Source of the DNA: Octopus sinensis
Lineage: Eukaryota
Reading direction: 5' to 3'
Assembly: GCF_006345805.1 (NCBI RefSeq)
Contig: NC_043018.1
Span: forward strand, 26,226,001 to 26,290,000
Length of the DNA stretch: 64,000 bases
Shown here: positions 2,573 to 59,271 of the stretch, piece by piece
Numbering within the stretch: the first letter of the stretch is position 1
Layout of the letters: each line of letters opens with the position of its first letter
The notes under the pieces: generated by a model
Told to the model about the DNA's origin: nothing
Databases searched by the model: none
What the model saw: only the letters and a program-made list of their open reading frames with translations
Position numbers and translations under genes: made by a program

Positions 2573-2587
2573 CCAGAAATTGGGAAG
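2573..2587 (+). CDS. unc-13: unc-13 15-nt microexon copy A, (A)RNWE(x), phase 1-1
   Basis: ttttctttttccctag|CCAGAAATTGGGAAG|gtattt. Paralogue at 13123 differs only at two synonymous positions; in frame with downstream exons. Confidence 0.7.
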
Positions 2588-5500
2588 GTATTTATTATTT
2601 TGTTCTTTATAAATATCTTGTTGTATTTTATGATGTACTTGCACATTGGTATGGGACTCGGTACCAATCAATGGATAGCTTGGGCTAACTTGTTGAAACG
2701 TCTGGTTGATATTAAAAAAAAATAATAATAAAAGAAAAAAAATTGGTAGCCTTTGATAGTATCAGCTTTTAAATTGTTTGTAGAACAAGAATTGAAATTT
2801 GCTTTTTAGATGTACAAAGTAGTCAGTTTACTTATGTAAGCAGAACAATTGAGAAACAGAGAAATCAATAGGATCATTTCTATTAATGTTACCAGTAACA
2901 TATTTTAATTAAACATGTTGCCTTGTTGCCTTATATGGCACTGCTTGGCCATTTGCATGTTTATATGGCAGCACTCGGCCACTCAATTTCACGAGCAGGT
3001 CATTCCATTGATCGCACCAACTGGAACGCTTGTCAAGTAACCGGTCAAGTGCCAGGCCATGGAGTGTACATTTTTTAAACTATCAACAAGAAGTTTAAAT
3101 TTCTCCATAGTCAGTGTATAATCACCTGCCCTCGTCAATCTGGCAAATAATGTTCTTCTTTTACAATTGACTTCATGGAAGGGCAATTTGTTGTGATATG
3201 ATTTGGAAATGTTACCGTTGCAGAAGCATGTAACTTTAATAACGCGAACAAACGACTATTTAATTGTTTGAAATTGACACAAGTGATTTCTATTCTCTTT
3301 TGTGTATTCAGTTTCAGATGACAATCCATTTGCAATTATTTTCTTTTCCATTTCATTTTTCTGCTGTCATGATCGAAAATAACTGTGACATATATATTAC
3401 AGATGTGTCAGTACAAAGACATGATGCAATGTTGATGTGTTACAACTAAGCAGAAAAACACATATTTTTCTTGTCTATGTATTTATCTGTATAAGTACAT
3501 ATACCTATACATATATGCGTGTGTGTGTGTGGTATATATATATATAATATATATATATATATATATATATATATATATATATATATATATATATGATGTA
3601 TATCATCATCATCATCATCGTTTAACGTCTGTTCTCCATGCTAGCATGGGTTGGACGGTTCGACCGGGGATCTGGGAAGCCAGAAGACAGTACCAGGCTC
3701 CGGTCTTATCTGGCAAAGTTTCTACAGCTGGATGCCCTTCCTAACGCCATATATATGTATGTTTATGTATATATCTATATATATATGTTGTTTATGTATA
3801 TATTATATATATACATATATATATATATATATATATATATATATATATATATATATTATATGCATGTATATGCATATATTATATATAGTATGTATATGTA
3901 TATATTATATATAATATGTATGTATATGGCAGTGCCCCAGCATGGCCACAGCTCGTCGTGAGTTGAACTAGAATCAATCATATGTATCTATACATATGTG
4001 TGTGTGTGTGAGTATATGTATATATATATATATATATATATATATATATATAGATATATACACACATATTCATATCATACCAGAATGAAATTTTTTTGTT
4101 AAGCTTTCAAAAACAAAATCTGAGAGTTCCATTGCTGGGTTTTGTTAAATTTGAAGATTTTGTTGATCTTAATCATGCATTTAAAATCTTTAGTACATTA
4201 TCATTAACAAAAAAATGCAATTAAAAAAAAAAACCATTAAAAAAGAAACAAAAAACTGAAACCTCTTTTCTCCTTTTCTCAATTCACCTTAGCCATTAGA
4301 GTTGTATATTGTCCAGAAATTAGAATTGTTTTAGAACAATTTAGTGTTCGTTAGAAGAAAACTGAGCTGATCCTATGAAGGAATATGTATTAATTATCAT
4401 ATGCTATTATTGTGCTTTGTTTATAGTTGGAGTAATGGTTGGTTAATAATTTGTAGCATGGCTTTATCTTTGCAGTGGGTTTGTTGATATGTTTGACAAT
4501 GGTATCGTGTTTCAAAAGCTATAAGCACTATTAAAGCAATATTAGCATAAAATAATATTGCTTGAGTAATAAACAAGTACACTTGTTTAATGGCTATATC
4601 AATTCTGATCAATTTTTATGATATATTGATTGAAAAACAATCTGTTTAGTGAGCAACATGTATTTTTGTCAATAACTTGGCAGCAACGTTGAAAAATTGG
4701 CTGTTGCATAATAATGTGCCTTTAATTTCTGATGTTATTTACAAATTACTGATATTTTCAAACCAGTGAAATTAGTTTTCATATTATTAAAACATACCTT
4801 TTGAAACACTTCTTGTGACAAATACTATGTATATAAAATTATGGAAAAAATGTTAAAAATGTCACCCTTTAAAAATCTCTTTATATTATTAACAACTTCC
4901 AAAATAATATTTCTTTCTTTTTTTTCCTTTTTTTTGTCTTTTGTCTGATATTAAACAGGATAATCTTAAGAAAACACTAGCTATGATTTATAAAGTATAT
5001 TTGGAAAATGAGATTTAGCAAAGTTATGCAAATACTACAGATTCTTAAGAAAACAAAATTTAAATATCTTAAGGCCTGCAGGAATGATTTTTCTTTCTTT
5101 CATTCTTTGTGTGTGTTTTACATCAAATTCTCTATTGAAATGTAAAAGAAAGCATTTTTATTTTGTCCTTGTTTTGGTTGTTTTTATTTCTTTTTTTGAA
5201 GAAAACCAAAACAATTTCAATGTGACTTGGCTTTTCTCCGTATATCGTTTTTATATCAAGTAAAATAGTCAATTGGAACAACTATAGATTATATGAAGAA
5301 AATGAATGAATGAACAGATAAAAAAAAACTGCAATGCAAGCAAATTATGTTTTATTACTTTTTTTATGTATATCATGTGATATATTTCAATACATTTAAA
5401 GTATAAAATCTTGTAATAAAATATGAAATATTTCCTCTGTTTTTTTTTTGCTTCGTATAATTAGTACAAAATAGTAAGAGTGTTGAGGGTTATTGCCTGT

Positions 5501-6732
5501 AATAACGTTGTATAACCAACAATATTCTCCAAAGAGCATTCAATAAGAAGCTCTCATTGATTTCAACCAGTTGAAAGCAACTGATAAATATGTAAATATG
5601 TAATAGGTTAAGCTATGATGCAACTCTGTGTCTGCAGAGGAGCCGTAAGTGAAGTGCTGTTGAATGATAGCATCATCATCGTAAACATATTTGCAAACTC
5701 CAGTTGCTTTTCCTGTTGCTACACTTAAAGGCTAATCAAAGGGAAAAGCCATTATCAGTTAATTTCAGTGTGTGTGTGTGTGTGTGTGTGTGTGTGTGTA
5801 TATGTATATATATATATATATATATATATATGTATGTGTACAGATATATATGTGTATGTATGTGTATATATATATGTGTGTATGTGTGCATATGTATGTG
5901 TGTGTGTATATATATATATATATAAACTTAGATGAACTTAGATATATTTCGACCAAAGATTGGTTCAGGCCATGTCTAGCTTTATATATATTGAGTATTG
6001 GAAACTTATGAACCCCCAAGAGAATGTCCAATATGGTTGGAATCATGTTAGAAGAGAAGGATTTCTAGTATCTTGGTTTTAGTATCTTGGTTGCTATCTG
6101 CAGCAGACATTATTAGAAGCCTCACAAGGAACTGACAGCACTGCACATATTCCTGCTAACTAATTTGGTCACATTAAATGGCTATCTGTCATAATAGTTA
6201 ATGGTCCTTTTTGCATTAATTCATTTTATAGGTATGCTCAGAAGAATATTTAATTATTTCGCATGGAAAGCCTTTCACAAGTTTTATATTAGACCGATTT
6301 TCTATAAAGATTTATGTGTGTTTGTTAAGTTATCCTGATGTAATCATTTTAGTTTCCCATTTTGGTTATTGTTACAATTTCTTCAGTTTTTTTTTTACTT
6401 CGCAATTGCAGGCAACATTTCTGTTTTGTTTTGTTTAATATTTTTCCATTTAATAATCAGGATTAAAAATCATATTTTTAGGTAAATTACTCCACTACTT
6501 AAAGTATAAAGGGTGAACATTTATATATTAAAATAATGATTCTCACAGCAGTAGTTTTGTTTCCTGTGGTGAATTTTAAAATGTAAGAAGCATTACTGGG
6601 CTTGTGTGAGTCAATATTTTAATTAAAATATGTATTTCTGTATTATGAAATGAAGGCAATATTTCTGTTTTGTTAATTGAAAAGCTTGTTTACATATTAC
6701 AGTTCTATATTTATGAGATGAGGAATTATATG

Positions 6733-7165
6733 CATTATTTACATTTGACGGATATTTGTCCTCATCTTGTGTGTTGTTAGCTCAACGTTTTGGTTGATAT
6801 ACCCTCCAACCTTCATCAGGTGTCCTGGGTTCTCATTCCTAAAGTATTTTTCAATGTTATTAATAATATTATTATTATCTTATGCCACATGGCATATACT
6901 ATGCCATATGCCCATGGACATATGATATAGTGGTGAAGAATGCGGGCTACTAAACCCAAAATTCCGAGTTCAATTCCAAGCAGTGACTTGAATAAAATAA
7001 TAATAATAATAATAATAATAACAACATTGAAAAATACCTTAGGAATGAGAACCCAGGTTTGAAATTTCCGCAAGACACCTGAAGAAGGCTGGAGGGTATA
7101 TCAGCCAAAACATTGTGTTAACAACAAACAAGATGAGGACAAATATCCGTCAAATGTAAATAATG
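6733..7165. mobile_element. Inverted-repeat element with Penelope-like ends and a tRNA-like spacer
   Basis: Arms 6733-~6878 and ~7000-7165 are reverse complements. The ctgaagaaggctggagggtatatcagccaaaac motif resembles Penelope-like element termini. Confidence 0.6.
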
Positions 7166-7489
7166 TAAATAATGTTTACATATTTCAGTTTTCTCGTTTG
7201 AATTTAACTCTTTTGTTTTGTCAATTGAAATCAACAATTCTGTATTTCACTTTTGTCAAATTGCAACAATGTAGAATGAAGTGCCTTGCTCAAGGACACA
7301 AAGTACTACCCTATCCTGCCCTGCCATGCCCTGCCCTCCCCCTGCTCTGTCTTGCTCCACTCTGCTCAGAAATCAAACCCATGACATTATATGATCAATA
7401 GGGTGTTAGAAGAAAGTGTTGAAGGAAGGAGAGCTGAGATTAGAGGGTGATAGAGGAGAGAGCAGTGTAAGTGATATGCATACACATGC

Positions 7490-58074: not shown

Positions 58075-58760
58075 ATATGTGTGTGTTTGTGTGTGCATGT
58101 GCGCATGTGTCTATATATATATGTACACACTTGTATACATGCGTACACATACATGCATTATATTTATGTGTTTATGTGTGTATATATATATGTGTGTGTA
58201 TGTATTTGTGTGTGTGTGCATATGTGCATTTCTATATATACGTACACACTTGTATATATGCGTACACATACATGCATTATATTTACGTGTTTATATATAT
58301 ATATATATATATATGTATTTGTGTGTGTGTGTGTGCATTTCTATATATATGTACACTCTCTTATATACATGTGTACACATACATGCACTATATTTATGTG
58401 TTTATATGTGTATATATATATATATATGTATGTATTTGTGTGTGTGTGTGTGTGCATTTCTATATAAATGTACACACTTATATACATGCGTACATATACA
58501 TGCATTATAGTGTTTTATATATTGTGTGTATATATATATATATGTATATATATATATATATATATATATATAGTAATATGTGTTAGTAATACCAGCAATT
58601 ATAATTATTTTTATTTTATCGCAATTTGATTTGTTTATATATATATATATATATATGTATTTGTGTGTGTGAGTGTGTGTGCATTTCTATATATATGTAC
58701 ACACTTATATACATGTGTATACATACAAGCATTATATTTTTGTGTGTGTATATGTATTTA
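58075..58760. repeat. Microsatellite-derived ~120-bp tandem repeat (about five units)
   Basis: gtgcatttctatatatatgtacacact ... catacatgcattatat recurs. Confidence 0.85.
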
Positions 58761-58979
58761 TACACACTTGAAACTTGTCGAGTGACCACTGCTGCTGTCG
58801 TCTTGTGGCTGTTTTTAGTGTAAGAGGCAGAGAGAGATAGAATATGCTATCTATCTATCTATCTATCTATCTATCTATATATATATCTATCTATCTATCT
58901 ATCTATCTATCTATCTATCTATCTATATATATATATATATATATATATATATATATATATATACACACTCACACACACA

Positions 58980-59040
58980 CAAGGTGGTATCAAAAAGTTC
59001 CCAGACTAGTTCTGTAGCATGCCAACAGATGGCAGCACAC
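58980..59040 (+). mobile_element. Mariner-like TIR remnant
   Basis: caaggtggtatcaaaaagttcccagact resembles TACGAGG...TCAAAAAGT...GGACT mariner ends (from memory). Confidence 0.45.
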
Positions 59041-59211
59041 AGTAGCATGCACAGTGAGAGCTATCAGTGACCTTCATGAGGCAGTGACGTACAGAAATTT
59101 GTGTTTTTGTGGTCATGTGTCTGAAAGTCACTTTCATTTTGTTTTGTCTTTTATAAAATCAAACAACTTCAAAGAAATCTTAATAAACACCTTATCTTTC
59201 TCTCCCAACAG

Positions 59212-59271
59212 TCCTGTTGACAGCCATGTTTCTTCCTTGAATGTAAGCAGACAAAGCACACAAGACTACAG
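59212..59271 (+). CDS. unc-13: unc-13 60-nt exon (S)PVDSHVSSLNVSRQSTQDY(R/S), phase 2-2
   Basis: cttatctttctctcccaacag|TCCTGT...CTACAG|gtaagt; strong sites, open in the phase left by 55957. Confidence 0.75.

Follow-up and report, generated by a model that had tools for sequence, protein, structure and literature searches.

Tandem microexons and a 114-nt exon in the post-C2A linker of the Octopus sinensis unc-13 gene, probably added in the octopus lineage

UNC-13 is a core vesicle-priming factor whose N-terminus sets the site and readiness of vesicle fusion, and control of release properties by C2A as well as by the X region, on which the original prediction for the DNA studied here built, is documented in the literature (PMC11991699). 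Microexons are known from several members of this family: a 9-nucleotide (nt) microexon of unc-13 encoding VLK in C. elegans and Drosophila, and a 6-nt microexon of mammalian Unc13c, alter synaptic transmission depending on their inclusion or skipping (PMC12287369), and mouse Unc13b contains a 6-nt SRRM4-dependent microexon between exons 13 and 14 (PMC4387716). In the complex of the rat Munc13-1 C2A domain with the RIM2alpha zinc finger (PDB 2CJS), residues 129-150 comprise a linker and a helix, and the linker, being extended, allows the RIM zinc finger to be bound on one face by the C2A beta-sandwich and on the opposite face by the helix (PMC1472246). No description of a microexon array at this C2A-helix tether was found in the literature on octopus microexons and unc13 microexons. 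Here, we analyse a stretch of 64,000 nt from Octopus sinensis (contig NC_043018.1, positions 26,226,001 to 26,290,000 of the forward strand), referred to as the window. It very probably represents the part of unc-13 that encodes the post-C2A linker in eight consecutive exons, in which an array of tiny exons and a 114-nt exon have been added in octopus and in which at least one of the added units may be skipped in some cells.

The assignment to unc-13 made in the original prediction is borne out by an exact match. One G from the upstream exon followed by the eight plus-strand exons listed in Table 1 translates into residues 93-297 of XP_036368007.1, the 388-aa RefSeq model 'protein unc-13 homolog B-like [Octopus sinensis]' (designated P0018 below), with 100% identity and zero mismatches, and the annotated mRNA carries all eight exons. 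The model was reached through the 90% cluster of the spliced product P0001, which together with 17 single-exon open reading frames (ORFs) from other animals had been retrieved from the database with the translation of the anchor exon. Since the translation is exact and the gene range of P0018 covers 228.6 kb in GCA_006345805.1, the window lies inside O. sinensis unc-13; the C2A exons are located upstream of it, the remaining gene downstream, and the introns between the eight exons measure 3-18 kb. Residues 1-79 of P0018 match PDB entries 2CJT (E=4e-26) and 2CJS (E=1e-29), which indicates homology to the C2A domain of Munc13-1, and the features of long-form UNC-13/Munc13 proteins are found in the expected kinds: a C2A domain, a post-C2A helix of the pattern D[LI]PE.EA...KLE..N, and the exon SEDSDYTSD ... 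EPLYYNSRP. The model ends ahead of the C1, C2B and MUN domains, which fall outside the window. A tblastn search of the window with N-termini of Munc13-1 and ubMunc13-2 detected the helix exon and, weakly, the anchor exon, with no C2A exon, and a Pfam search of P0018 and four intronic ORFs gave no match. All exons of the window are thus already part of the RefSeq gene model; what is new is the W/E array, which is located in the tether and is seen in no other model surveyed.

Table 1 Exons of the post-C2A linker and other mapped features of the window (positions are those of the 64,000-nt stretch)
Feature	Position	Strand	Length and phase	Encoded residues and remarks
Microexon ARNWE	2573-2587	+	15 nt, phase 1 -> 1	(A)RNWE; letters CCAGAAATTGGGAAG; third unit of the W/E array
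Microexon ARNWE	13123-13137	+	15 nt, phase 1 -> 1	(A)RNWE; letters CCAGGAACTGGGAAG
Microexon GYE	16939-16947	+	9 nt, phase 1 -> 1	(G)YE; letters GTTATGAAG
Post-C2A helix exon	26236-26315	+	80 nt, phase 1 -> 0	(D)LPEVEAAELQSKLDVLNSIMDQELNQ
46-nt exon	30943-30988	+	46 nt, phase 0 -> 1, asymmetric	YDSIQDQQRRQTYSQ
114-nt exon	37585-37698	+	114 nt, phase 1 -> 1	(F)SPLMAGHSLNSSLNSDEHLGQDNLLNCSKETVGRPLP
Anchor exon (SEDSDYTSD)	55681-55957	+	277 nt, phase 1 -> 2	GMSEDSDYTSD...SDTDSEPLYYNSRPNSRPQSFIND
60-nt exon	59212-59271	+	60 nt, phase 2 -> 2	(S)PVDSHVSSLNVSRQSTQDY
Tandem duplication	55877-56286	+	two ~205-nt copies	Each copy: 81 nt from the end of the anchor exon, then the donor and ~125 nt of intronic sequence
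Assembly gap	52350-52449		100 N	Inside intron 37699-55680 (~18 kb), (TA)n-type microsatellite on both sides

In P0018, the C2A domain is connected to the helix by the sequence ...IDARFELPY-GYEDWE-ADWE-ARNWE-ARNWE-GYE-DLPEVEAAELQ..., and the final three units of this W/E array correspond to the three microexons of the window. The GYEDWE and ADWE units must lie upstream, because DWE does not occur in the plus-strand frames of the window. The 15-, 15- and 9-nt exons are microexons in the sense that their length is a multiple of 3 and at most 27 nt and that they are bordered by AG/GT splice sites with strong pyrimidine tracts. The first is flanked by a polypyrimidine tract with a TAG acceptor and by a GTATTT donor; the 9-nt exon has a 90% pyrimidine tract, a CAG acceptor and a consensus GTAAGT donor and is read as ...WEGYEDLPE... 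in the model. The second ARNWE exon is a tandem paralogue located 10,550 nt downstream of the first. The two share a block of 46-47 nt consisting of the exon and its splice signals (79-85% identity), their further flanks are unrelated, and the only exonic differences, AGA>AGG and AAT>AAC, are both synonymous. By this pattern, the pair is a tandem exon duplication in which the peptide has been retained, and the array illustrates in compact form how a repeat can arise within a conserved protein when microexons are duplicated in tandem.

The original prediction had distributed its frame-preserving units over three slots, one before the helix exon, one before the anchor exon, and one behind it. 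Bare matches to AG, N open-frame bases and GT number 42-65 per length and slot, the same as in dinucleotide shuffles, and a filter for strong splice sites reduces the expectation to 0.3-0.6. With this filter, three 15-nt candidates were obtained in the first slot versus 0.39 expected. The motif TGGGARGGT has just two sites in 64 kb, both of them being the 15-nt exons. A search across the window for additional W/E or GYE-type microexons yielded none beyond the three, and the 114-nt exon and the microexons, when tested for an origin from repeats, had no other copies within the window.

To assess the distribution of the array, UNC-13 sequences were collected by exhaustive profile search from a Nucella seed, and 112 of them reach the end of C2A. 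In nearly all of these N-termini, ELP[YFL] is joined straight to D[LI]PE.EA or to the arthropod equivalent, and the 23-residue W/E insert is found in octopus alone. A few of the surveyed models contain long inserts that begin with G and resemble intron read-through, and the gastropod Nucella and the bivalve Sinanodonta have a 4-residue DVV[SA] insert at the C2A-helix junction, which is lacking in Biomphalaria. The frame of intron phases is common across Bilateria, with introns in phase 1 both behind C2A and ahead of the SEDSDYTSD exon and in phase 2 behind that exon, and it is within this shared frame that octopus has its inserted exons, the W/E microexon array and the 114-nt exon.

The octopus insert between ELPY and DLPE occupies the position of the C2A-helix linker. 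Whereas this linker consists of a few residues in rat Munc13-1, the W/E array would insert up to 23 acidic and aromatic residues into the tether that joins the C2A beta-sandwich to the helix behind it. As these two elements hold the RIM zinc finger from opposite sides in the rat protein, a tether of different length and charge could influence the binding of RIM or the homodimerisation of C2A, and either effect might in turn bear on priming. As a separate observation, HMMER aligned the W/E peptide EDWEADWEARNWEAR (P0018 83-105) to the rat helix EEEARYWAKKLEQ (2CJS chain A 144-160). ARNWE resembles the vertebrate ARYWA, the lophotrochozoan helix having AAEL at that place, and this likeness may be a coincidence or a convergence.

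The remaining exons of the linker differ in age. The helix exon came to light as a tblastn lead with a Munc13-1 sequence and then matched P0018 at 100%; the homologous post-C2A helix is present in more than 40 UNC-13 models. Because the helix exon ends in phase 0 and the 114-nt exon starts in phase 1, the asymmetric 46-nt exon, which the original prediction had omitted from its list of units between the anchors, is needed between them, and its homologues read TIKEQHRRPTYSQ in Owenia and PSYAQ in Nucella and Biomphalaria. The 114-nt exon is contained in P0018 and P0001 and is missing from the Owenia, Nucella and Biomphalaria models, in which the junction is SQ-S-GMSEDSD. The serine of this junction corresponds to T|CT, in which the 46-nt exon supplies its final T and CT follows, and in the octopus model with the 114-nt exon the codon becomes A|CT for threonine. 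The label SGMSEDSD originally given to the anchor exon presupposes a direct joining of the 46-nt exon to it and therefore does not describe the octopus model. By its distribution, the 114-nt exon appears to be a lineage-specific insertion.

The anchor exon is flanked by TTTTTGCAG upstream and by a GTATGT donor, and both of its ends are conserved in three related loci (L001-L003) and in the 17 database ORFs. The SEDSDYTSD exon is seen in molluscs, annelids and arthropods, and vertebrate sequences have DSDYRSE. An Rbfox-type TGCATG is located at 55992-55997, 35 nt downstream of the anchor donor, with a duplicated copy at 56197-56202. For the 60-nt exon, orthologous exons that are likewise 60 nt long and have the same AG/GT boundaries were identified in two other lophotrochozoan contigs, L002 (11443-11502) and L003, and the unit occurs as two tandem copies in both the Biomphalaria and the octopus proteins; it is an ancient, conserved exon and no cassette peculiar to this lineage. 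Longer exons opening with its SP.GS...S.QST.DY unit were observed at 12158-12260 and 15662-15760 of L002 and at 17722-17820 of L003, which indicates that the linker of other lophotrochozoans has undergone repeated duplication of this unit. The helix exon, the 114-nt exon and the microexons were also sought in the 10-kb flanks of L001-L004 and were not reached, the introns being too long.

The central question for the array and the 114-nt exon is whether their symmetry is used. As originally predicted, the five real units (15, 15, 9 and 114 nt, phase 1-1; 60 nt, phase 2-2) can be skipped without a frameshift, and the skipping of any of them creates a sense codon at the junction and no stop. Because the young units are frame-neutral and lie in a linker that is spliced modularly in other animals, we regard the skipping of at least one of them in some octopus cells as an evenly balanced matter. 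The octopus proteins covering the region in a collection of 15 billion proteins comprise one O. sinensis model, in which all five units are included, and two short O. bimaculoides-type fragments, which run from the 114-nt exon through the anchor exon to the 60-nt exon or from the anchor exon to the 60-nt exon; this collection holds few cephalopod models and no reads, and only inclusion products are among the octopus matches. A purely constitutive chain, in which octopus would always include all eight exons and the symmetry would reflect only which exon insertions leave a coding gene intact, is plausible, though somewhat less likely than not. It agrees with the single annotated isoform bearing all units, with the identical joins given by the independent O. 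bimaculoides-type models, and with the strong splice sites, namely pyrimidine tracts of 80-95% and consensus donors at the 9-nt and 60-nt exons. A lack of annotated isoforms is, however, weak evidence, above all where exons measure 9-15 nt; each of the two 15-nt exons ends at a GTATTT donor without a G at +5; and homologous linkers are alternatively spliced in the models of other animals. Among these, the unc-13-like isoforms X1-X4 of Cimex lectularius keep, replace or skip the helix block (ELPF-A-GYSEDSD in the latter case) and contain an 11-aa cassette following the anchor exon, and isoform X5 of deer Unc13b leads from C2A directly to the anchor exon. In three arthropod UNC-13 models (P0179, P0064, P0116), an alternative exon GRYDPP[ST]GWK.LL was noticed in place of the post-C2A helix block, which points to a conserved choice between mutually exclusive exons at the same intron.

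The opposite extreme is the one advanced in the original prediction, according to which the units are independently regulated cassettes and their combinations yield many linker isoforms that tune priming across neurons. In its favour are the symmetry of all five real units, the evolutionary youth of the microexon array and the 114-nt exon, the include, replace and skip isoforms of Cimex and the skip isoform of deer in the same linker, a TGC at -11 of the 114-nt exon, and the precedent of the 9-nt unc-13 microexon of C. elegans, which lies elsewhere in the protein and is switched between neuron types with functional effects (PMC12287369). Nevertheless, we consider such a regulated system improbable: the sole octopus model spanning the region includes everything and its 3-member 90% cluster is devoid of a skipping isoform, three of the eight proposed units found no support, the 60-nt exon is deeply conserved, with no model extending that far lacking it, and no UGC motif is found near the three microexons. 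The same doubt applies to the more specific proposal that the five W/E microexons of the gene and the 114-nt exon, in varied combinations, would determine how long and how charged the tether is and thereby grade RIM binding and release probability by synapse type; if true, a cephalopod-specific splicing code would operate in a core priming protein.

The eight phase-symmetric units originally listed are accordingly reduced to five, since the 15-, 15-, 9-, 114- and 60-nt units exist with the lengths and phases given, and the 15- and 12-nt units of the second slot and the 75-nt unit behind the anchor exon find no support. In the second slot, open AG-N-GT candidates number 47 (15 nt) and 54 (12 nt) compared with 42 and 45 in shuffles, strong splice sites are found for none of the former and one of the latter, and none of the candidates appears in a gene model; these two units are indistinguishable from chance AG...GT matches. 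The best candidates in this slot, at 53872-53883, 53230-53241 and 54981-54995, were rejected for want of conservation or gene-model support.

The 75-nt unit (56087-56161; AG...GT, phase 2-2) lies in the second copy of the tandem duplication given in Table 1. The two copies of about 205 nt are 94% identical, with exon and intron parts about alike, and show a TGGT microhomology at their junction, and the region is single-copy in six related loci (L001, L002, L003, L005-L007). The unit is a recent by-product of this species-specific duplication, and its use is unsupported. That it nevertheless serves as a cassette, repeating SDTDSE(P/L)LYYNSRPNSRPQSFIND, the most conserved motif of the anchor exon, is quite unlikely. 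It does possess a T-rich tract, a TAG acceptor, a copied GTATGT donor and an open frame in phase 2-2, and the copied TGCATG sits 36 nt downstream of it. However, its acceptor arose by chance where the two copies were joined, it is missing from the six related loci, and all three octopus-type models (P0018, P0001 and P0019) lack it, their products running from ...FIND directly into SPVDSH...; moreover, the duplication is young, and the about equal similarity of its exon and intron parts implies that no selection is visible. Least likely of all is that the RefSeq microexons are alignment or prediction artefacts and that C2A is in truth spliced straight onto the helix exon, in the manner of annelids and vertebrates: the direct junction is indeed the rule in almost every other UNC-13 model, but every microexon is preceded by a long pyrimidine tract with a YAG acceptor and followed by a GT donor, TGGGARGGT is confined to the two 15-nt exons, the ARNWE copies differ only synonymously and diverge outside their shared block, and an ab initio predictor would not be expected to place 9-nt exons.

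Several points weigh against the preferred reading of the locus as an octopus-added array of which at least one unit may be skipped in some cells. The UGC motif (TGC in the DNA) is absent within 60 nt upstream of the three microexons, which makes them a poor fit to the classical neural type regulated by SRRM4/eMIC. A scan of JGI metagenome contigs for AGCCAGRAAYTGGGARGGTATTT returned 0 hits. The term octopus-specific denotes absence from every other model surveyed, the related loci L001 and L004 stopping short of the microexon introns. The RNA-seq basis of the 9-15-nt exons in the RefSeq model is presumed from the way in which such models are built. Finally, the proposed effect of a longer, acidic and Trp-rich tether on RIM binding or C2A homodimerisation extrapolates from the rat structure.

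The one assembly gap lies in the intron that separates the 114-nt exon from the anchor exon, 14.6 kb after the former and 3.2 kb before the latter, and no candidate unit touches this gap. The O. sinensis model and the O. bimaculoides-type P0001, whose variant residues recur in A0A0L8FPA9_OCTBM, both read ...GRPLP-T-GMSEDSD... across the gap-bearing intron. As the models of two octopus species share this junction, the frame is independent of the gap and no constitutive exon has been lost; a rare exon within the unread stretch is possible, and the length of the intron is only an estimate.

The window is AT-rich (~34% G+C) and contains many microsatellites and short interspersed repeats. A CT-rich imperfect tandem repeat of about 1.5 kb (10750-12300; periods of 9, 15, 22 and 24 nt) gives rise to long spurious ORFs on both strands, S/P/L-rich on the plus strand and G/E/R-rich on the minus strand. 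Interspersed elements at 3638-3750, 20398-21040, 29435-29870, 43387-43700 and 59500-59900 share the motifs MLAWVGRFD...LDALPNA and GAFYVP and are probably repeats resembling short interspersed nuclear elements, with internal tandem units; they had no Pfam match, and an Rfam search of the whole window was likewise without a match. Dense TG/TA/CA microsatellite blocks are located at 1-830, 7390-8310, 39490-40020, 47580-47980, 55090-55450 and 58030-58590, and the gap at 52350-52449 lies in a similar block.

With its exons annotated beforehand and the isoform reading conjectural, the locus constitutes a modest lead and not a discovery; its interest is that an octopus array placed in the C2A/RIM clamp's tether amounts to a natural experiment on how the clamp responds to tether length. 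The closest known counterpart is XP_036368007.1 itself, the same eight-exon product, which is a bare annotation, the array and its tether position not being remarked on in the literature found. A further comparison is the DVV[SA] insert in the Nucella lapillus and Sinanodonta woodiana models, which is probably a 12-nt phase 1-1 microexon in the same intron as the octopus array, but which differs in being a single unit of unrelated sequence. The predicted isoforms of Cimex and deer share the linker and the phase frame with octopus, although the modules concerned are the helix block and other exons and not W/E microexons. The VLK microexon resembles the octopus units in that it is very small, preserves the frame and lies in a regulatory linker of UNC-13; unlike these, it is located between the calmodulin (CaM) site and C1, single and deeply conserved, and its regulation is proven. 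The 6-nt microexon of Unc13b is neural and belongs to an unc-13 paralogue, but it occupies another position, and an SRRM4-type UGC motif close to the 3' splice site was not found at the three octopus microexons. Runs of symmetric microexons whose alternative use generates protein variants are also characteristic of the micro-exon genes (MEGs) of Schistosoma, which encode small secreted proteins composed almost wholly of microexons, whereas in octopus a five-unit array is set inside a large conserved synaptic gene.

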